Shown here: piece after piece, positions 30,604 through 44,247 of the stretch
How the letters are laid out: every line of letters begins with the position of its first letter
Numbering within the stretch: the first letter of the stretch is position 1
IMG/VR virus record: IMGVR_UViG_3300043418_000114
Location: 1 to 64,000 of that record
Reading direction: 5' to 3' (one strand)
DNA: 64,000 bases
Notes under the pieces: model-generated
What the model was told of the DNA's origin: nothing
Seen by the model: only the letters and a program-made list of their open reading frames with translations
Databases searched by the model: none
Translations under genes and position numbers: made by a program

Positions 30604-32772
30604 ATGATTCTGTCAAACACTCCTCAGAACGAAGCAATCATGTCCAACGTCGGCGAGATTGGCGAGTTCCGCATTCGCAACAGTGCAAAAGCATTCTCGA
30701 TCTTGTCTAGCGGTCTGTACGCTAACAAGGTTCGTGCAATCATCCGCGAATTGTCTTGCAACGCAATTGACTCGCATGTTGCCGCTAAGAACATGGACAC
30801 TCCGTTTGATGTTCATCTGCCTAATGCTCTCGAACCCTGGTTCTCTATCCGCGACTATGGCACAGGTCTTTCACATGAACAAGTCACCCAAATCTACACC
30901 ACTTACTTTGAAAGTACTAAAACAGCGTCCAACGAATTCATCGGTGCGCTTGGTCTGGGATCCAAGTCGCCCTTTTCTTACACCGACAACTTCACCGTTA
31001 CAGCGATTAAAGACGGCGTTAAGGGTGTTTACACAGCCTTCATTAACGAAGCAGGTGTCCCGTCTATCGCAAAAATGATGGAAGAACAGACAAGTGATCC
31101 AGCTGGTGTTGAAGTTCGTTTTGCAGTTGAAGAACGTTACGACTTTGAAAAGTTCCGTCAAGAAGCACGTAGTGTTTACAAGTTTTTCAAGCAACGTCCT
31201 GTGATTTCAGGCGATGCAAACTTTGAATTCACTGATCCAACGTATATCGAGCGGGATATCATTCCTGGTGTGCATACCACTGATCGTGGCTATCACAGCT
31301 ACGCTATCATGGGCAACATTTCGTACCCTATCGAAATTCCTCACACTGACAAGACTCTTGGTGACTTGTCTGCCATGTTGAACTGTGGTCTGGTTATGGA
31401 ATTCGGCATCGGTGAACTTGACTTCCAAGCATCACGTGAAGGCCTGAGCTACATTCCTCAAACCATCAACGCAATCAAGGCTAAATTGCAAGCATTGAAT
31501 GCTCAACTGTCTGTGCATATTGCAGAAGAAGCCAACAAGATTGAAAACTTGTGGGAACGTGCGATCTACCTGTACAAGCGTAAAGATGAACCACTGTGGC
31601 AAGCCGCAGTTAACAAGTACGTGACTGACACCAAGTTTCCTCTGTTGGACGTTTCTACACATCGTTATGATGCGTTGAAGCAATTCAAGTTTAATGTCAA
31701 GACCTTGGCATCTAAGTACAACATTGTGTTGCGTGGTTTTTCTAAGTCTCGCGGTGTTGCAACCTGTTCGAATCTCAAAGTGAACGGTAGCTACGTTGCT
31801 TCTGGTCCTTCTACCAACATCACAAATACATATGTTGAAGAATGGCAGATTCGTGTTAGCGAAGACACTTACTTTGTGTTTAACGACACTAAGATTGGTG
31901 CATCTGAACGTGCTAAAGCACACTGGAAGAACAACTCGTTCTCTAACTATACTTCTGCCGTTTACATCATTGAAGCCGCTGACAAGACTAAGGATGTCAA
32001 GCTGGATAAATTCTACAAAGAATTGATGAATCCTCCAGCTAATCGTCTAATGAAGGCCAGCGAGTTGGACGAAGTTGAACGTGCAAGTGGCATGGGCAAG
32101 AACGTGACTATCATGTGCTTGGAAGAAACCACTCGTGGTGGCTACTGGTCTCGTCGCACTGAAACAGTGTGGCGCGATGCTGGCAAAGCTGATACGTTCG
32201 ACAATAAGAAAAAGTATTACTACTTGCCTCTGAGTGGCTATCAGTGTACTGGTGTCGTTGAAGATGCTAAGTCTTTGGCTCGTCACGTTAAGCAAGCTGG
32301 CATCTTTAATGAAACCATTTACGGTGTGCGTAAGGCAGATCAAGAATGGGTTAAGTTGCAAAAGAACTGGATCAACTTGGATGTGTTCATCAAAGATGAA
32401 TTGTCTAAGTTGGGTAACAGCGATGTGATGGGTTTGGTTAAGAAAGCTATTGACTTTAGCGAAATCTATCAGTATAATGCTGTTAAACACGTGACTGATA
32501 GCAACAGTCCGTACATTAAGTTGTACAACGTTTTCAAAGACGTTAAAGTTGCTGATGAATCTGTCCGTTCTGCTTTGGAGTACCTGTGCCGATGCTATAC
32601 TGTCAACACAAAAACTAACGTTGACCCTAAAGCACTGATCGAACAGTACACTAAAGAAGTTGAGGAACTTAAAAAGCGTTACCCGCTGATTAAGAGTCTC
32701 AGTAAGTACAGTACCGAAGGTGCTGATGTAGCCGAGTATATTAATTTGATTGACACACAGAAAGGTGTTTAA
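30604..32772 (+). CDS. rIIA: RIIA-like protein
   Basis: GHKL motifs RELSCNAIDSH, IRDYGTGLS, STK, GLGLGSKSPFSY; paired with rIIB. Confidence 0.9.
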   Translation: MILSNTPQNEAIMSNVGEIGEFRIRNSAKAFSILSSGLYANKVRAIIRELSCNAIDSHVAAKNMDTPFDVHLPNALEPWFSIRDYGTGLSHEQVTQIYTTYFESTKTASNEFIGALGLGSKSPFSYTDNFTVTAIKDGVKGVYTAFINEAGVPSIAKMMEEQTSDPAGVEVRFAVEERYDFEKFRQEARSVYKFFKQRPVISGDANFEFTDPTYIERDIIPGVHTTDRGYHSYAIMGNISYPIEIPHTDKTLGDLSAMLNCGLVMEFGIGELDFQASREGLSYIPQTINAIKAKLQALNAQLSVHIAEEANKIENLWERAIYLYKRKDEPLWQAAVNKYVTDTKFPLLDVSTHRYDALKQFKFNVKTLASKYNIVLRGFSKSRGVATCSNLKVNGSYVASGPSTNITNTYVEEWQIRVSEDTYFVFNDTKIGASERAKAHWKNNSFSNYTSAVYIIEAADKTKDVKLDKFYKELMNPPANRLMKASELDEVERASGMGKNVTIMCLEETTRGGYWSRRTETVWRDAGKADTFDNKKKYYYLPLSGYQCTGVVEDAKSLARHVKQAGIFNETIYGVRKADQEWVKLQKNWINLDVFIKDELSKLGNSDVMGLVKKAIDFSEIYQYNAVKHVTDSNSPYIKLYNVFKDVKVADESVRSALEYLCRCYTVNTKTNVDPKALIEQYTKEVEELKKRYPLIKSLSKYSTEGADVAEYINLIDTQKGV

Positions 32773-32773
32773 A

Positions 32774-33895
32774 ATGAGCTATCCGTTTATCGTCCAAGGT
32801 AATAACATTACCGTCGTGATTGGCAACAAGCCACACACAATCTCTAAGTCTCACATCACTTATAACAAAGTGCTGGAAGCTATCAAAGCCCAAGATTGGG
32901 ATTTGGTAAAGAACATCATTGAGCCTGTCAAGGTCGTATTGAATTACGGTCAAGGTCATGTTTCAGTCAAGGGTGAAACCTTGTTCTGGAAGGGCAAAGA
33001 AATGCACAACGCATTGTCTACCCGCATGATTGCAATGTTGCAAGATGGTTTCCCTATCGAGCCACTGGTTAGCTTCATGGAAAACTTGATGACTAACCCA
33101 AGCAAACGTGCAGTTGATGAACTGTATGGCTTCTTGGAAAAGAATAGCTTGCCTATCACTCCTGATGGTCACTTCTTGGCATACAAGAAAATCCGTCGTG
33201 ATTACAAGGACATTCACTCTGGCACAATGGATAACTCTGTTGGCAAGATTGTCGAAATGGCACGTAACGAAGTTGACGACAACAAGGATCAAACTTGCTC
33301 CACTGGTCTGCACTTCTGTAGCGAAAGCTATTTGCAACACTTCGGTGGTAGTGATAGCCGTGTTGTGATCTTGAAGATCAACCCTGCTGATGTGGTTTCT
33401 ATTCCTAGTGACTACAACAACTCTAAGGGTCGTGCATGTCGTTACGAAGTTATCGGTGAAATCGGTAACAACCCTGATGACGCGGTTGAGTTTGACAAGC
33501 CAGTGCAAACTACTGCAAACTCTATCTATGTTCCAGAGCCTAAGATTGGCGCTACTGACTTCTATCAAGGCTATAGTGATGGTTACCATGGTAACCCATA
33601 CAATGGCTCTGGCAAGAAGTATTCAGAAGGCTACGATAAGGGTAATACCCATAAAATCGATGGTACTCCTGAAATGTATCGCTATGAATTCTTTGATGAA
33701 GTCGAAGTTGATTTTGATTTCTCGGAAGAATTCGTTGATGATGTGTTCGAAGATGTTGCCGGTCAAGAATACGATGCAAATGGGCGTCCTCTGAGCATGA
33801 CTCCAAATGCGATTCGTAAACGTGCCGCACGTGCCGCAAAGCGGGCACAGGCACAAAAGATTGTCGGTGGTTCTTGGCCACAACCTAAGAACTAA
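32774..33895 (+). CDS. rIIB: RIIB-like protein
   Basis: NPSKRAVDELYGFL, ITPDGHFLAYK, CSTGLHFC, KINPADVVSIPSDYN, KGRACRYEV. Confidence 0.9.
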   Translation: MSYPFIVQGNNITVVIGNKPHTISKSHITYNKVLEAIKAQDWDLVKNIIEPVKVVLNYGQGHVSVKGETLFWKGKEMHNALSTRMIAMLQDGFPIEPLVSFMENLMTNPSKRAVDELYGFLEKNSLPITPDGHFLAYKKIRRDYKDIHSGTMDNSVGKIVEMARNEVDDNKDQTCSTGLHFCSESYLQHFGGSDSRVVILKINPADVVSIPSDYNNSKGRACRYEVIGEIGNNPDDAVEFDKPVQTTANSIYVPEPKIGATDFYQGYSDGYHGNPYNGSGKKYSEGYDKGNTHKIDGTPEMYRYEFFDEVEVDFDFSEEFVDDVFEDVAGQEYDANGRPLSMTPNAIRKRAARAAKRAQAQKIVGGSWPQPKN

Positions 33896-33968: not shown

Positions 33969-33992
33969 GGACATATGACAAAGGAACACAAA

Positions 33993-34439
33993 ATGAAAAA
34001 AGGTGAAATGCTAGACAAGATGTTGGTCATCGTGACCAATGCACATCATGGTCAATTCGATAAGGGTGGAAATCCCTACATTCTCCATCCACTTAAAGTC
34101 ATGCACTACTTGAAGTCAGACGATGAAGAACTCATGTGCATGGCTCTTGGTCATGACGTAATTGAAGACACTGATGTAACCTACAAAGACTTGCGTGATG
34201 CTGGCATGACTGAGCGCATTATCAATGGCATCTGGAGACTTACTAAGCAACCTGGTCAAACATACGACGAATACAAAGAAGGCGTGTTCTCTAATGAGGA
34301 TGCTATGCGAGTAAAGCTGGCAGACTTGCGACACAACACAGATATTCGCCGTTTGAAGGGTGTCACTGAAAAAGATATCGCACGTATGGCAAAATATCAC
34401 ACTTTTTACATGGAAATTCAATCCAAACTTGACAAATAA
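33993..34439 (+). CDS. HD-domain small alarmone hydrolase-like protein (SpoT/Mesh1 type)
   Basis: AHHGQFDKGGNPYILHP, GHDVIEDT, LTK, VKLADLRHN. Confidence 0.8.
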   Translation: MKKGEMLDKMLVIVTNAHHGQFDKGGNPYILHPLKVMHYLKSDDEELMCMALGHDVIEDTDVTYKDLRDAGMTERIINGIWRLTKQPGQTYDEYKEGVFSNEDAMRVKLADLRHNTDIRRLKGVTEKDIARMAKYHTFYMEIQSKLDK

Positions 34440-35912: not shown

Positions 35913-36277
35913 TGCACAATCGTGAACAACTATGGTATTCCGCTGACGGTCGAAGCGTGAAGATTAAGGACATGACAATTGGCCATCTGGTCAATGTCAT
36001 CAATTGGGTCAGTGATAACAAAGACTCATATCCACTGTCCACTCTTGATGTGATGATTGCCGAAGCAGAATATCGCCAACTCACCCTGTTTGCAGAAGCC
36101 AAGGCATACCCACAAGTTATCAACAATCGTTGGGTACTGATTGACCCTAAAACAGGCAAGAAGGGAATTATTCCCCCACCAAAAGAATACCTTGATAGTG
36201 TCAAGGACAATGTGGCTTATCAGAAAATGAGTCAGAATACTCAAATCAAAAGAGCCAAACGAAGGAATATTGCTTGA
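35912..36277 (+). CDS. hypothetical protein
   Basis: WYSADGRSVKIKDMTIGHLVNVI. Confidence 0.7.
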   Translation: MHNREQLWYSADGRSVKIKDMTIGHLVNVINWVSDNKDSYPLSTLDVMIAEAEYRQLTLFAEAKAYPQVINNRWVLIDPKTGKKGIIPPPKEYLDSVKDNVAYQKMSQNTQIKRAKRRNIA

Positions 36278-36302
36278 CCTTTAATAGGAATGGCACTATA
36301 AT
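36274..36302 (+). promoter_or_regulatory. sigma70-type promoter
   Basis: TTGACC-N17-TATAAT. Confidence 0.85.
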
Positions 36303-36315
36303 AGAACCATAGCAA

Positions 36316-36357
36316 GCGATAGACGCAAGCGACATATAACTAGAAAGGATTTTTCTA
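36316..36357 (+). promoter_or_regulatory. candidate cis-regulatory leader RNA, copy 2
   Basis: GCG-ATAGA-CGC then TAGAAA-GGATT-TTTCTA hairpin covering RBS and the A of ATG. Confidence 0.6.
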
Positions 36358-37376
36358 TGTCAAAAGAATACGGAACCCTAGTCCTCATCGGACGTTTTCA
36401 ACCCCTGCACAATGCTCACCTTGAGATTATCAAACGTGCAACTGCCTTAACTGACCAACTGATCATAATCACTGGTTCAGCCGCACAACCTCGCACTTAC
36501 AAAAACCCGTTCACAAGCGATGAACGTGCAAGAATGATCAAGTCTGCAACCAGTGGCTTGGCTATGAGAGTGCATGTTGAAGAAAACATTGACACTATCT
36601 ACAATGATCAAGCATGGGCAGTGCGTGTGCAAGGCATTGTTAGTAAGTATCGCATCCTCGGCACAAAGACTGCCGTCATCGGCCACAAGAAAGACGAAAG
36701 TAGTTTCTACTTGGATATGTTTCCTCAATGGGAATACGTTGATGTGGAAGAAATCGAACCACTCAGTGCTGTGAACATTCGTGACTTGTATTTCAAGCGT
36801 GATTGCAACATGAAATTCATTCGTGGTGTTGTGCCTGAAACTACATTTGATTTCTTGACCACATTCAAAGACACACCTGAGTACGAGCAAATCATTCGTG
36901 AACGTGAGTTTGTTGAAACATACAAAAAGCAATACTCTAGTTTGCCTTACCCTCCAATCTTCTCTACTGCCGATGCTGTAGTGATTCAGAGTGGTCACGT
37001 ACTGATGATTAAGCGCCGTAGTGAACCAGGCAAAGGTCTGTGGGCACTGCCAGGTGGCTATGTCAATGCATACACTGACAAGTCAGTAGAAGATGCCGCC
37101 ATTCGTGAACTGCGTGAAGAAACCATGATCAAAGTTCCTGCACCAGTGTTGCGTGGTAACATTGTTGACAATCGTGTGTTTGATGCAGTTGATCGTTCAC
37201 CCCGTGGTCGTATCATCACACACTGTTTCAAGATTGTGTTGCCTGATGGTGAACTGCCTAAAGTAAAAGGCAGTGATGACGCTGAAAAAGCACGTTGGGT
37301 TCCTATCGCAGAGGTCAAGTCGGAAGAATGTTTCGAAGATCACTACGATATGGTCATGTGGGCAGTTGGAGCATAA
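36357..37376 (+). CDS. nadM: bifunctional NMN adenylyltransferase / Nudix ADP-ribose pyrophosphatase
   Basis: IGRFQPLHNAH, IITGSA, KNPFTSDER; Nudix box PGG...EDAAIRELREET; GSDDAEKARW. Confidence 0.93.
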   Translation: MSKEYGTLVLIGRFQPLHNAHLEIIKRATALTDQLIIITGSAAQPRTYKNPFTSDERARMIKSATSGLAMRVHVEENIDTIYNDQAWAVRVQGIVSKYRILGTKTAVIGHKKDESSFYLDMFPQWEYVDVEEIEPLSAVNIRDLYFKRDCNMKFIRGVVPETTFDFLTTFKDTPEYEQIIREREFVETYKKQYSSLPYPPIFSTADAVVIQSGHVLMIKRRSEPGKGLWALPGGYVNAYTDKSVEDAAIRELREETMIKVPAPVLRGNIVDNRVFDAVDRSPRGRIITHCFKIVLPDGELPKVKGSDDAEKARWVPIAEVKSEECFEDHYDMVMWAVGA

Positions 37377-37377
37377 T

Positions 37378-37587
37378 ATGCACAAGAGCAACTACCAACC
37401 CAAGCGTAGTCAACAACTCTTTCTAGCTGAACAAGTTAGAATCAGGGTGTTTAACGCTACAATGGATCAGATTATTGTGCATCATGTGTTGGAAGATACT
37501 CCAACCAGACTGTATCTGCAAATTGAACGCCGTGAAACAAGCCCATTCGGCTATGAAAAGATTTACTTTGAGCGAGTGGAGTTGTAA
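37378..37587 (+). CDS. hypothetical protein
   Basis: GGAG RBS; 69 aa. Confidence 0.55.
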   Translation: MHKSNYQPKRSQQLFLAEQVRIRVFNATMDQIIVHHVLEDTPTRLYLQIERRETSPFGYEKIYFERVEL

Positions 37588-37588
37588 T

Positions 37589-37786
37589 ATGGTACGAGTT
37601 GTTAAAACAGAACCACATCCAAGTGTTGTCAAGGAAGTGATTTGCAGAAACTGTGGAGCTACATTGGAATATGTACCCGCAGATATTAAAAAAGAAGTTC
37701 ACAGGGATTACGGTGGCGGTAGTGACACATACTATCACATCGTTTGTCCACCATGTGGTGATAAAGTTTCAGTAAAGGGGTATTGA
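37589..37786 (+). CDS. small zinc-ribbon protein
   Basis: CRNCG...CPPCG. Confidence 0.7.
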   Translation: MVRVVKTEPHPSVVKEVICRNCGATLEYVPADIKKEVHRDYGGGSDTYYHIVCPPCGDKVSVKGY

Positions 37787-37787
37787 T

Positions 37788-37976
37788 ATGACTACACAAC
37801 AATACAAACGATTAGAAGATGGCCCAATGGATGATATTGACGCTACTATCTTTAGTGGTGATACTTTTCATAATCGTGAAAATATCAAAGCCTTTCGTGA
37901 CATGATGGCACGTTGGGAACGTGGCTTACAAGAAGCCGAAGCTATTGTAACAGAAATGGAAAAAGAAAATGCTTAA
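37788..37976 (+). CDS. hypothetical protein
   Basis: 62 aa in operon. Confidence 0.6.
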   Translation: MTTQQYKRLEDGPMDDIDATIFSGDTFHNRENIKAFRDMMARWERGLQEAEAIVTEMEKENA

Positions 37977-38490
37977 ACATACAAAAGGTAATCTACTCGA
38001 CCTAGCAGAAGCAGGCGAGTTCGATATTGTCGTTCAGGGCTGTAATTGCTTTAACGCAATGGGTGGTGGCATTGCCCGAGAGATTGCAGAACGTTATCCT
38101 TATGCGGCTCAAATTGACAATGAGACTAAACGAGGTGACTACATGAAGCTTGGCACATGGACAGAAAGCGAAGCCGGAGATTACTTTGATACTGTCACCT
38201 ATTCAAGAAACAATAAGTTTCAATTTGGTGATCCGAAGAGATTCACCATTATCAACGCCTATACACAATACAGTGTGTCTCGTGGTTTTGATGTGTTTGA
38301 GTATGTTGCATTTGAATTGATTTTGCAGAAACTCATTCATGAATATGGTGACAAGCGTATCGGATTGCCTTACATTGGCATGGGTCTTGCAGGCGGTGAC
38401 AAGGAAACTATCATTGGAATGATTGAAGCCTTTGCTCATGGTGTCGCAAGTAAAGGTGGCACTGTAACTTTGGTAGAGTTTGGAGGTTAA
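37969..38490 (+). CDS. macrodomain (Appr-1-p processing / ADP-ribosylhydrolase)
   Basis: KGNLLD, VQGCNCFNAMGGGIA, INAYTQ, LPYIGMGLAGG. Confidence 0.88.
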   Translation: MLKHTKGNLLDLAEAGEFDIVVQGCNCFNAMGGGIAREIAERYPYAAQIDNETKRGDYMKLGTWTESEAGDYFDTVTYSRNNKFQFGDPKRFTIINAYTQYSVSRGFDVFEYVAFELILQKLIHEYGDKRIGLPYIGMGLAGGDKETIIGMIEAFAHGVASKGGTVTLVEFGG

Positions 38491-38491
38491 T

Positions 38492-39442
38492 ATGTGGGAT
38501 AAAATTGGAATTTTTGAAGATGAAAAAGAACATGTTAAGAAGTATGTTTTCGAGAAAGATGATATCGCGGTCGAATCTGTACTATATCGGTACCCAACTT
38601 ATAGTGAACGCACTGTTCTTTGCATTAGTACCATGTGTGGTTGTCCTATGGGCTGTCGTTTCTGTGGTACAGGTGATTACTACGTTCGTAATCTCACCGC
38701 TGATGAAATTGTGGGACAAGCTGAGTACATTCTTGACACGCAAATAGACGGACTGGATCCAGCTAAGATTGGCAAGTTGCAAATCATGGTAATGAGCATG
38801 GGTGAGCCTGCACTGAATAAGAATTTGGAGCAAGCATTTGAAACTCTTTATGCGAAGTACCCTAACGCCGCACTGCTGATTAGCTCCAGTGGTCCTAAGG
38901 TTAGTTATGTTTGGATTCGTAACATGAGTGTTCGTATCCCTACTGTTGGGTTGCAGTTTAGTATTCACGAATCTACCGACGAGGCTCGTGATAAACTTAT
39001 TCCATTCGATAAGAAACTCAATCTAAAAGAGATTGCCGACATTGGCACACAATGGTTCTTAGACACTGGTCGTAAGCCATACTTTAACTATTGCGCTCAT
39101 GAAGGCAATAACACTGATGCAGACGTACAACGTATCAATGCATTGTTTAAACCAGAAATCTGGGAAGCAACGGTGTCCGTGATTTGTGAACGTGATAGCC
39201 ATGCAGTTGCAACTAACAATAAGCAACGTGACTTGGCAATTGACTTTGGCAACAAACTCGTTGAACAAGGTTATAATGTCAGAGTATTCGACCCTGCAGG
39301 ACAAGATACAATTGGTGGCGGTTGCGGTCAATTGTGGTATGTGCAAGATTGGATGAAAGATCATCCTGAGCATGTAAAGCCATCTGTAGGCTGTGGCTTG
39401 CAGAAAGTACACACACCTAAGGAGTGGAATCTATGCGTATGA
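38492..39442 (+). CDS. rlmN: RlmN/Cfr-family radical SAM RNA methyltransferase-like protein
   Basis: LCISTMCGCPMGCRFC, MSMGEP, FSIH, GGGCGQL. Confidence 0.8.
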   Translation: MWDKIGIFEDEKEHVKKYVFEKDDIAVESVLYRYPTYSERTVLCISTMCGCPMGCRFCGTGDYYVRNLTADEIVGQAEYILDTQIDGLDPAKIGKLQIMVMSMGEPALNKNLEQAFETLYAKYPNAALLISSSGPKVSYVWIRNMSVRIPTVGLQFSIHESTDEARDKLIPFDKKLNLKEIADIGTQWFLDTGRKPYFNYCAHEGNNTDADVQRINALFKPEIWEATVSVICERDSHAVATNNKQRDLAIDFGNKLVEQGYNVRVFDPAGQDTIGGGCGQLWYVQDWMKDHPEHVKPSVGCGLQKVHTPKEWNLCV

Positions 39443-39897
39443 TTAAAGCACCAGAGCAAGTGCCAGAGGATGGCATTCGTGTGTTTCTTGCTGGCTCAAT
39501 TGAAATGGGAGTTGCTGAACAATGGCAAGAGCGTTTGGCAAAACTTTTAGAAGACACTGATTGTATTCTAGTGAATCCTCGGCGTGATGATTGGGATTCA
39601 TCATGGGTACAATCTATTGACAATCCACAATTCAATGAACAAGTAAATTGGGAATTACACGGATTAGAAGATGCACACATTGTTGTGTTTTATTTTGATC
39701 CAAATACAAAAAGTCCAATTACACTAATGGAATTGGGATACGTAGCGGCAATGCCATGTGTTGATGTTGTAGTTTGTTGTCCAGAAGGATTCTGGCGCAA
39801 AGGCAATATTGATATCATGAGCAAGCGTTGTGGACTCGAAACGGCAAAAACTTTAGAAGAAGTTGCCGAATTCGTGAGGAATCAGTTGACTCAATAA
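39433..39897 (+). CDS. nucleoside 2-deoxyribosyltransferase-like protein
   Basis: VFLAGSI, NPRRDDW, QVNWEL, SPITLMELG. Confidence 0.8.
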   Translation: MRMIKAPEQVPEDGIRVFLAGSIEMGVAEQWQERLAKLLEDTDCILVNPRRDDWDSSWVQSIDNPQFNEQVNWELHGLEDAHIVVFYFDPNTKSPITLMELGYVAAMPCVDVVVCCPEGFWRKGNIDIMSKRCGLETAKTLEEVAEFVRNQLTQ

Positions 39898-39969: not shown

Positions 39970-41373
39970 ATGAAACTCGCAAAAAACATTCTGTTGAACA
40001 CAGACAGCTACAAAGTTAGCATGTTCAAACAATATCCAGCTGGCACTACAGGTGTATTCAGCTACATTGAAGCCCGCGGTGGCAAATACAATGAAACAGT
40101 CTTCTTCGGACTGCAAGCCTTTATTAAGGAATACTTACTTGACCCTATCACTCAAGCCGACATTGATATTGCAGATGAGATCCTTACTGCTCACGGAGAG
40201 CCCTTCAACCGAGAAGGATGGGAATACATTCTATCAGCACACGGTGGTTACCTTCCCGTCGTTATTCGTGCTGTTCCTGAAGGCACAGTTGTGCCTGTTA
40301 AAAATGTTCTGGCAACAATTGAAAATACTGATCCGAATGCGTATTGGTTGACAACTTGGCTCGAAACTGCCTTGCTTCGCGCAATCTGGTATCCTACCAC
40401 AGTTGCTACACAAAGCAAGACCATCAAGACAATCATTCAATCTTACTTGGAGAAATCAGGTGACCCTACTACAATTAGCTTTAAGTTGCACGATTTCGGT
40501 GCTCGTGGTGTGTCTAGCCTTGAATCAGCGGCTATCGGAGGTGCGGCACACTTGGTTAACTTCATGGGTAGCGATACTATTTCTGGTGTTCTGTATGCTC
40601 GGGAATTTTATAACGCTGGGGTTGCGGGCTTCTCTATCCCTGCCGCGGAGCACAGTACAGTTACTAGTTGGGGACGAGACAACGAAGTAAAAGCATATAG
40701 CAACATGGTTCGTCAATTTGGTATCCCTGGTGCAATTCTCGCTGTGGTATCTGACAGTTACGATATCTACAAAGCATGTGAAATGTGGGGTAGTGGCGAA
40801 TTGAAACAACAAGTTGTTGATTCGGGTGCTACTGTCGTGATTCGTCCTGATAGTGGTGATCCAGCAGAAGTGTTGCCAAAAATGTTGCGTATCTTGAGCG
40901 AAAAGTTCGGGTATACAACTAATGACAAAGGCTACAAAGTCTTGAACAACGTTCGTGTGATCTGGGGTGATGGTATCAATCAGTTGAGCATCCAAACAAT
41001 CTTCCGTACTGTTGTTGATCTTGGTGGCTATAGTGCTGACAACCTTGCATTCGGCATGGGTGGTGCCTTATTGCAACAACTTGACCGCGACACTCAGAAA
41101 TGGGCTATGAAGTGTTCAAGTGCTTGCATTGATGGTGAGTGGGTCGATGTATTCAAAGATCCAATCACTGATAGTGGCAAAACTAGTAAGAAAGGTCGTG
41201 TGACTCTGTGGACTAATAGTGGTGGTGAATACGCTACAAGCGTGAATGCTCCAACTGGCTGGACTGACAAAGGCATCGGCGGCTGGACTGAGGTACTCGA
41301 AGAAGTATACCGCGACGGCAAATTGGTCAAAGAAATTGACTTCGAAACTGTTCGCGCCAACAGCAACAAATAA
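39970..41373 (+). CDS. nadV: nicotinamide phosphoribosyltransferase
   Basis: TDSYKVS, LHDFGARG, SIPAAEHS, VSDSYD, IRPDSGDP, IWGDG, FGMGGALLQ, SKKG. Confidence 0.95.
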   Translation: MKLAKNILLNTDSYKVSMFKQYPAGTTGVFSYIEARGGKYNETVFFGLQAFIKEYLLDPITQADIDIADEILTAHGEPFNREGWEYILSAHGGYLPVVIRAVPEGTVVPVKNVLATIENTDPNAYWLTTWLETALLRAIWYPTTVATQSKTIKTIIQSYLEKSGDPTTISFKLHDFGARGVSSLESAAIGGAAHLVNFMGSDTISGVLYAREFYNAGVAGFSIPAAEHSTVTSWGRDNEVKAYSNMVRQFGIPGAILAVVSDSYDIYKACEMWGSGELKQQVVDSGATVVIRPDSGDPAEVLPKMLRILSEKFGYTTNDKGYKVLNNVRVIWGDGINQLSIQTIFRTVVDLGGYSADNLAFGMGGALLQQLDRDTQKWAMKCSSACIDGEWVDVFKDPITDSGKTSKKGRVTLWTNSGGEYATSVNAPTGWTDKGIGGWTEVLEEVYRDGKLVKEIDFETVRANSNK

Positions 41374-41400
41374 GAAATTGGGCATTTTGCCCATTTCTTT
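41372..41400 (+). terminator. probable terminator hairpin
   Basis: AAGAAATTGGGCA/TGCCCATTTCTT. Confidence 0.6.
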
Positions 41401-41463: not shown

Positions 41464-42525
41464 ATGGCACGTTTTTTTAAAAATGGCAATACATACCGAG
41501 TAGCTTCTAACGAAGCGATGGACATTCGTGATCTGTTGCCTGCTGGTAACTACACAATCAAAGTTCCCCCAATGGGCGATATGTACCTTGAACATATCGA
41601 AGACTTCTCCATTCCTTCTAAGGTCTATGGTGATTGTCTCAAGAACACTGATCGCATCATGCAAACATTCATGAAACGTCCTGCGGCGACTGGTGTTATG
41701 TTGACTGGCGAAAAAGGTTCTGGCAAAACTCTGTTGACTAAGAACATTGCTACTCAGTTGGCAAAACAACATAACGTTCCCACAATCGTTATCAATCAGC
41801 CTCTGTGCGGTGAAAACTTCAACACATTCATCCAGTCTATTGATCAACCATGTGTGATCTTGTTTGATGAATTCGAGAAGGTCTATGATCGTGATGACCA
41901 AGAAAAGATTCTGACTCTGTTGGATGGCGTGTTCCCTTCTAAGAAACTGTTCTTGATTACTACCAACGACAAGTACCGTGTTGACTATCACATGCGTAAT
42001 CGTCCTGGTCGTATCTTCTACATGTTGGACTTCAAAGGTTTGGATTCTACGTTCATTCGTGAATACTGCGAAGATGCCTTGAACGATACTACTCATATTG
42101 ACCGTATCGTCAATATCTCTAGCTTGTTCGCTGAATTCAACTTTGACATGCTGAAAGCATTGGTCGAAGAAATGAATCGTTACAACGAATCTCCACAGGA
42201 AGCACTGCGTATGCTGAATGCTAAACCTGAGTTTGACGGTGGTTCTAAGTATGACGTTCAGGTTATTCACAATGGCCAGGAAGTCAAGGGCGATATTCAC
42301 CCATCTATCTTTGACGGTAACCCATTGCAACCTAAGGGTCTGGAAGTATCTTTTGATATGGATCCAGATGACGATTCTTGCGACTGGGAAAACTGCCACT
42401 TCAATGCTAACGCATTGGTCTCTGTTGATGCACAGATTGGCAAGTTTGTGTTCGAAGACAAGGGTACTCGCTTGATTCTGACTAAGGTCAAGAGCAAGCA
42501 ATACGATTACTTGTCTGCATTCTAA
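41464..42525 (+). CDS. AAA+ ATPase
   Basis: GEKGSGKT, ILFDEFEK, LLDG, LITTN, RPGR. Confidence 0.88.
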   Translation: MARFFKNGNTYRVASNEAMDIRDLLPAGNYTIKVPPMGDMYLEHIEDFSIPSKVYGDCLKNTDRIMQTFMKRPAATGVMLTGEKGSGKTLLTKNIATQLAKQHNVPTIVINQPLCGENFNTFIQSIDQPCVILFDEFEKVYDRDDQEKILTLLDGVFPSKKLFLITTNDKYRVDYHMRNRPGRIFYMLDFKGLDSTFIREYCEDALNDTTHIDRIVNISSLFAEFNFDMLKALVEEMNRYNESPQEALRMLNAKPEFDGGSKYDVQVIHNGQEVKGDIHPSIFDGNPLQPKGLEVSFDMDPDDDSCDWENCHFNANALVSVDAQIGKFVFEDKGTRLILTKVKSKQYDYLSAF

Positions 42526-43239: not shown

Positions 43240-44247
43240 ATGTCTAGTGTAGTTCGAATTAAATCTGGTTTCTATCGTCATTATCCCGTCAAAGGAATTG
43301 TATTCAATCTGATTAAAGGCTATCGCTATGGCACTCGTTGTGGGTTTGTGACTGTTGAGAACACTGGTCAGTTTCCAGGCTTTCCCGACACCCTGCGTAT
43401 CAAAGTGGTCGATCAACATCAAATCGAATATCTCTCTGGTCATGAATCAGTTGAAGAAGATATCATTGAAGAAGAATCTGATGATGATGCAATGGATCGT
43501 ATTGCTAGTCGTTTTGGTGTACTCGATGAAATGTCCAAAGCATGTATTGCTGGTGACATTCGTGCCATGATCGTTACTGGTCCTGCAGGTATTGGCAAGT
43601 CGCATGGTGTCACCACGCAAATGGAAAAAGCATCCTTATTCAATGCAGTGACAGGTGATAAGCCTCGCTTTGAAATTGTCAAAGGTGCAATGTCCGGTAT
43701 TGGTCTGTTTGTGAAGCTACACCAATACAATGATAAGAAAAACGTTTTGATATTTGACGATTGTGATATCTGGGAAGACCAAGACGCTATCAATATTCTG
43801 AAGGGTGCGCTGGATAGTGGCAAAACTCGTCGTATCTCGTGGAACAAAGATTCTCGCATTCTTAAAGACGAAGGCATTCCTAACACGTTTGACTTTAACG
43901 GATCGATTATCTTTATCACTAATAAGACGTTCGACAATCGCCGAGCAAGCAAGATTCAGCCTCACTTGGATGCTCTACAGTCTCGTTGTCACTTTCTTGA
44001 TCTGACTGTCAATACTGAACGTGATAAGATGCTTCGCATCAAGCAAGTGCATCGTGACGCTCCTGGTGGTCTGTTTGCTGACTATGAGTTTGATGAATTA
44101 CAGACGGATGAAATCATGAATTTCATATGGGACAATCATGAAAAACTGCGTGAAATTTCTCTGCGTATGTGTTTGAAGATTGCTGATCTAGTAAAGATTA
44201 GTAGCAACTGGCGTATGCTTGCACGTGCAACTTGTATGCGTGAGTAA
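43240..44247 (+). CDS. P-loop/AAA-like ATPase with extra N-terminal domain
   Basis: GPAGIGKS, LIFDDCD, ALQSR. Confidence 0.8.
   Translation: MSSVVRIKSGFYRHYPVKGIVFNLIKGYRYGTRCGFVTVENTGQFPGFPDTLRIKVVDQHQIEYLSGHESVEEDIIEEESDDDAMDRIASRFGVLDEMSKACIAGDIRAMIVTGPAGIGKSHGVTTQMEKASLFNAVTGDKPRFEIVKGAMSGIGLFVKLHQYNDKKNVLIFDDCDIWEDQDAINILKGALDSGKTRRISWNKDSRILKDEGIPNTFDFNGSIIFITNKTFDNRRASKIQPHLDALQSRCHFLDLTVNTERDKMLRIKQVHRDAPGGLFADYEFDELQTDEIMNFIWDNHEKLREISLRMCLKIADLVKISSNWRMLARATCMRE

Follow-up and report, generated by a model that had tools for sequence, protein, structure and literature searches.

To our knowledge, RlmN and Cfr are the sole characterised class A radical S-adenosylmethionine (SAM) methylases, and we know of no characterised member of their family that methylates anything but an adenosine in RNA. 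RlmN (E. coli b2517; EC 2.1.1.192; PDB 3rfa, 5hr6, 5hr7) is a dual C2-methylase of A2503 in 23S rRNA and A37 in tRNA. Cfr (S. aureus pSA737; PDB 9p0p) methylates C8 of the same A2503, giving resistance to phenicols, lincosamides, oxazolidinones, pleuromutilins and streptogramin A (PhLOPSA), and is a clinically important multidrug-resistance enzyme. Here we describe a short relative of these enzymes, rSAM, encoded at positions 38492 to 39442 of a 64,000-nucleotide stretch of viral DNA (the window). The window makes up positions 1 to 64,000 of IMG/VR virus record IMGVR_UViG_3300043418_000114, which, with 364,247 bp and direct terminal repeats, is a jumbo phage. As the substrate of rSAM we favour, tentatively and with a little less than even confidence, an RNA adenosine: most likely A37 of tRNA, recognised in an altered way.

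The second kind of system against which the locus has to be compared is the phage NAD+ pathway. NARP2 consists of nicotinamide phosphoribosyltransferase (Nampt) and Nmnat, as in Vibrio phage KVP40, and NARP1 consists of Adps and Namat. Both are published as two-gene pathways with no radical SAM component, whereas relatives of rSAM adjoin NARP2-like or NARP1-like pairs. The papers checked on NARP1/2/3, on NAD-ADPr viruses and on jumbo phages hold no mention of a radical SAM or RlmN-like gene, and those on the NAD+ pathways name no methyltransferase either. Our wider literature search likewise found no such gene in phage NAD modules, no phage-encoded A37 methylase and, in what is searchable, no characterisation of the short phage clade described below.

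Translated with genetic code table 11, the reading frame runs from an ATG at 38492 to a stop codon at 39440-39442 and encodes 316 amino acids, exactly the extent given by the original prediction for this DNA. The longest version of the frame opens with a TTG at 38480; we take the ATG as the start because the homologues begin there ('MW...'). It is preceded by GGAGG and lies 1 nt past the stop of the upstream gene. In comparisons with relatives that share 84-88% of the protein sequence, pN lies at 0.09-0.12 and pS at 0.65-0.87 (synonymous sites are saturated), with dN/dS of about 0.05-0.07 where computable. This is a genuine, intact gene on which purifying selection acts strongly. Its relatives are encoded on 325 IMG/VR stretches; a megablast of the locus against GenBank phages gave no match, though close records may be masked there.

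Catalytic core, family and fold

We aligned rSAM with E. coli RlmN (NC_000913.3) and S. aureus Cfr (pSA737) using MAFFT. All five mechanistic cysteines align with those of RlmN and Cfr and are conserved in the clade. The gene and its motif codons are as follows.

38492 to 39442, plus strand: rSAM gene (protein P0001, 316 amino acids), short-form class A (RlmN/Cfr-type) radical SAM methylase, from translation, NCBIfam, AlphaFold2 (AF2) model and fold
38621 to 38623, plus strand: codon of C44, equivalent of RlmN C118 and Cfr C105, the resolving cysteine, from the alignment with both enzymes
38642 to 38665, plus strand: codons of C51 to C58, the CX3CX2C motif of the [4Fe-4S]/SAM cluster, invariant in the clade alignment (A1) and matched by Pfam Radical_SAM
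38798 to 38809, plus strand: codons of M103-G104-E105-P106, the MGEP motif, from translation and conservation in the clade alignment
39314 to 39334, plus strand: codons of G275 to L281 (GGGCGQL) with C278, equivalent of RlmN C355 and Cfr C338, the methyl-carrying cysteine, from the alignment

The cysteine of the L43-C44 pair stands 7 residues ahead of the cluster motif. An upstream cysteine is present in every row of the clade alignment, one position later in P0128, P0136 and P0139. C51, C55 and C58 align with C125, C129 and C132 of RlmN, the cluster of Cfr being C112, C116 and C119. Within MGEP, M103 and G104 are invariant and E105 and P106 nearly so; within GGGCGQL, the same holds for G275, G279 and L281 on the one hand and G277, C278 and Q280 on the other. 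The original prediction had read the CxxxCxxC motif, the LC and GCGQL cysteines and MGEP from the DNA, and each is indeed there, aligned with its RlmN/Cfr position. A second cluster formed by C302 and C315 of the C-terminal tail was considered and rejected: neither cysteine is conserved in the clade alignment.

Family models agree on where the protein belongs. In Pfam, only Radical_SAM (PF04055) is matched, with 33.1 bits against a cut-off of 29.5, which places rSAM in the superfamily. The NCBIfam model of RlmN (TIGR00048) gives E = 3.3e-28 and 98.7 bits, below its cut-off of 290, and the three Cfr models give E of about 1e-26 and 90-92 bits, below cut-offs of 468-550 (92.2 vs 530 for NF000424, 90.1 vs 550 for TIGR04432). 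The next, unrelated NCBIfam family reaches only E = 6e-3, and PHROGs v4 offers weak, partial matches only. Among PDB sequences the best match is Cfr 9p0p (E = 8.6e-22), with RlmN-type chains at 3e-16 to 1e-12.

For the AF2 model, which draws on 25 members of the clade, the mean predicted local distance difference test score (pLDDT) is 92.2, and the fold is a partial TIM-barrel. In Foldseek, structures of Cfr and of the RlmN type come first, at E = 1e-18 to 1e-13, and QueE is the next radical SAM enzyme, at 5e-7. The best single match is the 'probable RlmN' of Sphaerobacter thermophilus, 6fz6 (E = 1.4e-18; Z 27.9 at 25% identity), a bacterial chromosomal RlmN-type protein which, unlike rSAM, keeps N-terminal residues before the aligned core (range from 62). 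Superposition with VIA-align on the RlmN-tRNA complex 5hr7 yields Z 29.5 and a root-mean-square deviation of 2.9 Å over 280 residues; Cfr follows with Z 20.2, the next family with Z 15. By both sequence and fold the closest relatives are thus RlmN and Cfr, clearly ahead of other radical SAM enzymes. With RlmN the protein shares the radical SAM core and beta-extension, the cluster motif, the two cysteines outside it, MGEP and GCGQL; with Cfr, the family, the mechanistic residues and one pocket tyrosine. We conclude that rSAM is a class A (RlmN/Cfr-type) radical SAM methylase, a match far beyond chance, and probably an active one.

The short phage clade and its substrate pocket

A HMMER scan of 1.84 billion representatives returned 70 proteins at E <= 1e-30, of which the full-length ones are nearly all 280-320 amino acids long. 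Canonical RlmN/Cfr-type proteins of 340-380 amino acids first appear at about 1e-22 and are matched from about residue 75. We built a tree of 93 full-length rows with IQ-TREE (LG+C20+F+G4); it is unrooted, with no outgroup, and the sampling favours relatives of rSAM. The protein is placed among short proteins, in a clade of 52 rows that includes the GenBank homologues from phages Stenotrophomonas ANB28, Vibrio 496E54-1, Salmonella Arash and Aeromonas Ahp1. This clade is parted, by a branch with a Shimodaira-Hasegawa-like approximate likelihood ratio test (SH-aLRT) value of 99, from a 41-row clade, within which all RlmN and Cfr references nest in an 18-row group (SH-aLRT 99). The same split is recovered in a second tree. 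As there is no outgroup, the claim is an unrooted one: neither RlmN nor Cfr is as close to the rSAM clade as the two are to one another.

By this placement, rSAM is neither RlmN nor Cfr and belongs to a separate clade of short proteins, so far found mainly on viral contigs. Sequence and fold uphold the predicted relationship to RlmN and Cfr, but the phylogeny gives no placement within either clade, and treating the protein as one of the two enzymes has to be given up: it lies outside their joint clade, misses both sets of curated cut-offs 3- to 6-fold and matches neither in its pocket residues. Databases label clade members '23S rRNA (adenine2503-C2)-methyltransferase', 'RlmN', 'radical SAM, partial' or 'hypothetical'; for the first of these labels the evidence gives no support. 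Compared with RlmN, rSAM has only about 22% identity, leaves RlmN residues 1-78 unmatched, is acidic and phage-borne and sits in an NAD module. Compared with Cfr, it lacks the N-terminal lobe and has a different pocket.

The missing part is the N-terminal RNA-binding domain. The TIGR00048 match begins at model position 77 of 355; in the structural alignment, residues 1-304 of the model correspond to RlmN 79-372 and residues 1-268 to Cfr 65-329. The domain model RlmN_N (PF21016), present in canonical relatives, is not matched in rSAM. The original prediction had suspected the loss of this helical domain, and the model start, the structural boundary and the absent PF21016 match all bear it out: the domain is absent from rSAM, with no counterpart to RlmN 1-78. 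That it had been split off as an upstream gene was considered and rejected, the upstream frame encoding a macrodomain protein.

The pocket differs as well. Ten residues have been proposed to set C2 versus C8 chemistry, with Q329 as the C8-specificity residue of Cfr (10.1101/2025.09.18.677109). The signature of the phage clade at these sites is Y32, Y34, R40 and V42; L96, Q97 and M99; and D267, P268 and A269. Cfr residues W101, S103, D150, S151, S153, S328, Q329 and F330 are replaced by R40, V42, L96, Q97, M99, D267, P268 and A269, respectively. The only Cfr-specific match is Y34 (Cfr Y97), R40 matches R114 of E. coli RlmN, and most other RlmN-specific equivalents are missing too. Given the clade placement, the missed cut-offs and these residues, neither the choice between C2 and C8, nor targeting of 23S A2503, nor antibiotic resistance can be inferred for rSAM.

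An orthodox role is nevertheless the first alternative to weigh: rSAM would form m2A or m8A (2- or 8-methyladenosine) at A2503 of the host 23S rRNA, tuning translation or leaving the infected cell insensitive to compounds that target ribosomes. The best profile, sequence and fold matches are RlmN and Cfr, the catalytic residues are complete and the two pocket matches just named would fit. A host target is also conceivable for a gene that occurs in phages with very few tRNAs (a single one in W02). We nonetheless consider this role improbable. Besides lying outside the RlmN and Cfr clade, scoring 98.7 against 290 and 92 against 530, and having lost the N-terminal domain together with W101, S103, D150, S151, S153, Q329 and F330 of Cfr and most RlmN-specific equivalents, rSAM keeps a basic residue at only one of the ten basic Cfr positions modelled to hold 23S rRNA (K195, equivalent to K250). 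Host RlmN, moreover, already provides m2A at A2503 in most bacteria. Both roles that the original prediction put forward, ribosome remodelling and tRNA shielding, are possible.

tRNA position 37 as a candidate target

Our leaning toward RNA, and tRNA in particular, comes from the chemistry of the family on RNA, the half of its conserved basic residues that is left, the tRNA genes of all large carriers and the cost of two SAM. Radical SAM methylases are slow and spend two SAM per turnover, which would suit the modification of a limited number of sites in macromolecules better than that of a metabolite present at millimolar concentration.

We surveyed 12 positions that are basic in at least 75% of canonical RlmN/Cfr rows and compared them with 17 phage-clade sequences. 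The phage clade keeps a basic residue at the equivalents of K94, R141, R242 and R274, and also where E. coli has A270 (rSAM R194); the K250 and K300 equivalents vary, the former (K195 in rSAM) being basic in 12 of the 17. The clade has also gained conserved basic residues of its own: K95, R214 and R264.

Each of the 37 carrier records that reach 100 kb encodes tRNAs (the median is about 24), and in phage ANB28 and one further locus (L076) the rSAM gene lies within a tRNA array. In the record studied here, 45 tRNA genes form one minus-strand array at 225695-240882, outside the window. Counting also the tRNA with a CUA anticodon noted below, A37 is found in 41 of 46 phage tRNAs, including Arg-ACG, Asp, Glu, Gln and His, types modified by E. 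coli RlmN.

Under this reading the reaction would follow the ping-pong chemistry of RlmN and Cfr. One SAM would methylate C278, and a second, cleaved at the [4Fe-4S] cluster of C51, C55 and C58, would give a 5'-deoxyadenosyl radical that abstracts hydrogen from the S-methyl group and leaves a methylene radical there. The latter would attack an sp2 carbon of the adenine ring, either C2 or C8, and C44 would resolve the covalent adduct. The target would be an RNA adenosine recognised in a new way, most likely position 37 of phage-encoded and/or host tRNAs.

Several observations weigh against it. The lost N-terminal domain holds R41, K65 and R68, conserved in 11, 9 and 10 of 11 aligned RlmN/Cfr-type sequences, respectively. 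When RlmN was crystallised with tRNA, its R206 was seen in bidentate contact with G29 of the tRNA; recognition by RlmN depends on the tRNA as a whole, D-arm and acceptor end included, and a 17-mer anticodon stem-loop is no substrate (PMC5130265). Both R206 and R344 are invariant in the RlmN/Cfr rows. In rSAM, R206 is replaced by A126 (alanine or another non-basic residue across the phage clade) and R344 by F266; no phage-clade sequence compared has a basic residue at either equivalent. In the pocket, K345-T346-R347 becomes D-P-A, so that K345 and R347 give way to aspartate and alanine. The protein is acidic, with an isoelectric point (pI) of 5.3 and a net charge of -10, as are most of the compared clade proteins (pI about 5-6; 3 of 17 are neutral to basic). 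The tRNA array of this genome lies about 190 kb from the gene, some carriers encode only 1-2 tRNAs (W02 being the extreme, as noted above), and the six commonest neighbour families of rSAM are all NAD+/ADP-ribose enzymes, with no RNA-handling family among them.

The original prediction of an RlmN/Cfr-like RNA methyltransferase holds in its first half, on sequence, fold and catalytic residues; RNA is a tentative assignment as the substrate, with RNA-binding features lost. Its proposal that the truncation may alter substrate choice is sound.

The tRNA complement of the record shows further peculiarities. A37 is carried by phage tRNAs Pro-UGG (2 of 3), Leu-UAG and Arg-UCG (e.g. 226772-226848, 233917-233991, 234483-234572 and 240149-240222), whose bacterial counterparts usually have G37 (m1G); this could be relevant to evading tRNA-targeting defences of the host, or to an A37 methylase. 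One tRNA called by ARAGORN, at 227532-227606 of the record, has 8 nt in its anticodon loop and a four-base anticodon, 'tttc'; it may be a frameshift-suppressor-like tRNA or a miscall. A transfer-messenger RNA gene (tmRNA; tag ANDSVFALAA) and a tRNA with the amber-reading CUA anticodon stand near the right end, at 361980-362523 and 363408-363482.

The NAD+/ADP-ribose gene run and its alternatives

In the window, rSAM sits in a tight co-directional run between a promoter-like and a terminator-like site, both of them consensus matches. The other features of the run are these.

36274 to 36302, plus strand: promoter-like site ahead of the Nmnat-Nudix gene (11 of 12), where the transcription unit may start, from a consensus scan only
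36357 to 37376, plus strand: bifunctional Nmnat-Nudix (NadM/NatV type), NARP2 component, from Pfam CTP_transf_like and NUDIX and NCBIfam PRK05379 (Nudix half, E = 3e-57)
37475 to 37786, plus strand: small Zn-ribbon protein, from weak Pfam Zn-ribbon matches and phrog_2834
37969 to 38490, plus strand: macrodomain protein of DarG/Poa1p/TARG1 type, from the AF2 model (pLDDT 78), Foldseek and phrog_335 (E = 3e-34)
39424 to 39897, plus strand: nucleoside 2-deoxyribosyltransferase-like (NDT-like) protein, from Pfam PF15891 (E = 4.6e-34)
39970 to 41373, plus strand: Nampt (NadV), NARP2 component, from Pfam NAPRTase (E = 2e-57) and NAMPT_N (E = 7e-28)
41379 to 41393, plus strand: terminator-like hairpin just past the Nampt stop, possible end of the unit, from a consensus scan only

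The flanking Nmnat-Nudix, macrodomain, NDT-like and Nampt genes bear out the predicted counter-defence island. Nmnat-Nudix and Nampt make up a NARP2 pair, of which rSAM is no defined component; as an accessory gene it would be expressed in one counter-defence unit with the Nmnat-Nudix, macrodomain, NDT-like and Nampt genes. The start of the NDT-like gene overlaps the rSAM stop by 19 nt (39424-39442), which suggests translational coupling. The macrodomain model matches DarG 5m3i (E = 7e-7) and, more weakly, Poa1p and TARG1, despite a non-significant Pfam Macro match (E = 0.019); proteins of these types are ADP-ribosyl glycohydrolases or ADP-ribose-1''-phosphate phosphatases. The Zn-ribbon gene accompanies the module in close relatives (L006-L014, L030).

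Beyond the run, a small HD-domain phosphohydrolase is encoded upstream at 33975-34439 (phrog_990, E = 5e-60; weak Pfam HD_4), and an 80%-identical copy stands near NAD genes in L013 and L014. Two large frames upstream, at 30604-32772 and 32750-33895, cluster with rIIA- and rIIB-like genes ('protector from prophage-induced early lysis'), which suggests an early-gene region; genes so annotated adjoin the rSAM and NAD genes in Vibrio phage 496E54-1. Directly downstream of the module lie two AAA-type ATPase genes (41464-42525 and 43240-44247), homologues of the first being near rSAM in L021, L030 and L033.

We compared 91 viral and GenBank loci with a homologue, dereplicated at 80% rSAM identity to 48 lineages; the statistics come from crude calls of open reading frames and BLAST clustering, and the lineages are not fully independent. 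Within 10 kb of rSAM, Nampt/Namat is found in 15 of the 48 lineages, Nmnat(-Nudix) in 14, macro in 8, and NDT-like, NADAR and Prs/Adps-like proteins in 6 each, any other protein family in at most 5; tRNA genes occur there in 15. Three of the six lineages with an NDT-like neighbour have no Nampt gene nearby. The NADAR proteins (PF08719, E = 1e-50) are exemplified by L020:8811-9467, with homologues in L031, L050, L057, L069 and L081. Gene order varies: Nmnat-rSAM-Nampt, Nmnat-Nampt-rSAM, Adps-Namat-rSAM and rSAM-Adps-Namat are all seen, and on the rSAM tree the linkage must have been gained or lost at least 8-11 times.

Among carrier records of 100 kb or more, 24 of 37 have a NAPRTase-family gene; reported rates are 22-33% in medium and jumbo phages (PMC9503650). 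In GenBank, such a gene is present in 2010 phage records (4%) and the rSAM clade in only 13. The two genes lie within 3.5 kb of each other in 11 of the 24 records holding both (8 of 20 lineages), with a binomial tail of 1.6e-7 at random placement and 4e-4 if accessory regions are taken to lift p0 to 0.1.

This context could point to a different substrate: an adenine ring outside ordinary RNA, free or in an ADP-ribose-linked nucleotide, methylated within NAD+/ADP-ribose counter-defence. Candidates would be NAD+, ADP-ribose (ADPR), an ADPR-derived immune signal, the NAD cap or ADP-ribosylated nucleic acid, and the product might, for example, be a derivative unusable by host NADases, TIR enzymes or effectors. 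In its favour are the identity of the six commonest neighbours in several gene orders, the repeated gains or losses, the frequency and proximity of NAPRTase-family genes, the tight packing of the run in the window, and the loss of RNA-recognition features in mostly acidic proteins. To these may be added P0141 (L102:2043-5374), a 468-residue rSAM-Nudix fusion of the phage clade that directly precedes Nampt (468 amino acids) and a stand-alone Nmnat (174 amino acids), with a second, ADPR-type Nudix upstream.

That fusion is a singleton, however, and its Nudix domain is MutT/RppH-like rather than of the ADPR type of NatV; a swap of Nudix domains between Nmnat and rSAM was considered and dropped, as the two share little beyond the Nudix-box region. 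No NAD gene lies within 10 kb of rSAM in 33 of the 48 lineages, and NAPRTase-family genes are missing altogether from 5 of the 16 carrier genomes that are near-complete. With these 33 lineages, and 13 GenBank phage records against 2010, rSAM is not a consistent, required part of the NARP2 module. NARP2 alone is experimentally sufficient and functions without such an enzyme (10.1101/2024.02.11.579819), slow and SAM-costly chemistry is poorly suited to bulk NAD+, and accessory and anti-defence genes of phages cluster for reasons besides a shared pathway. A small-molecule substrate is, moreover, not known for any class A radical SAM methylase. We regard an adenine substrate outside ordinary RNA as unlikely, though as the main rival of the RNA reading. 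That the short clade holds the first class A methylase of an adenine nucleotide (NAD+, ADPR, a cADPR-type signal made by TIR enzymes, the NAD cap or ADP-ribosylated nucleic acid) seems to us slightly less likely again.

Two subclades have unrelated surroundings. One (P0275; L104-L107), with proteins of 301 amino acids on 114 contigs of up to 470 kb, some from mouse gut and including a megaphage, has a wholly different, unannotated neighbourhood with no NAD genes and with a ThiF-like gene and a reverse transcriptase nearby; another adjoins a PAPS-reductase-like gene. The NAD link is thus not general to the short-form family.

A last alternative is that rSAM acts on DNA or the deoxynucleotide pool, placing a C-methyl-adenine anti-restriction mark in phage DNA, or that it carries out some different radical reaction, on a substrate not foreseen here. 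DNA modification is common among large phages, and the PAPS-reductase-like neighbour and two kinds of fusion could be read in this sense. P0231 (L103:724-3003; 759 amino acids) joins a short RlmN-like domain to an HD/HD_assoc dNTPase-like domain. P0435 (L110:3836-6453, L111, L112; 11 member sequences) joins an RlmN-like radical SAM domain lacking the N-domain to a phosphoribosyltransferase and adjoins an adenosine/AMP deaminase gene. The HD fusion is a singleton, though, both kinds stand on the RlmN/Cfr side of the tree, no DNA-modification genes are among the recurrent neighbours, and the NAD linkage would be left unexplained; we hold this alternative to be highly improbable. P0435, which occurs in bacterial, Bacteroidota-like contigs and nests with canonical RlmN/Cfr, is possibly a non-RNA, purine-linked use of class A chemistry. 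In P0433 (616 amino acids) a short RlmN-like domain is fused to TsaD, the tRNA t6A37 enzyme. Because P0231, P0435 and P0433 all fall on the RlmN/Cfr side, they say little about the phage clade.

Altogether, rSAM represents a third, large and mostly viral branch of class A enzymes that appears to have shed its RNA-binding domain and rebuilt its substrate pocket. Its repeated placement in NAD+/ADP-ribose modules suggests a function beyond current models of NAD+ reconstitution by phages. If the substrate is tRNA, as we tentatively favour, the clade would be a new case in which phages provide anticodon-loop modification themselves. Should it instead be an adenine nucleotide, rSAM would bring new enzymology and a new counter-defence principle: a C-methylation step in NAD-centred counter-defence.

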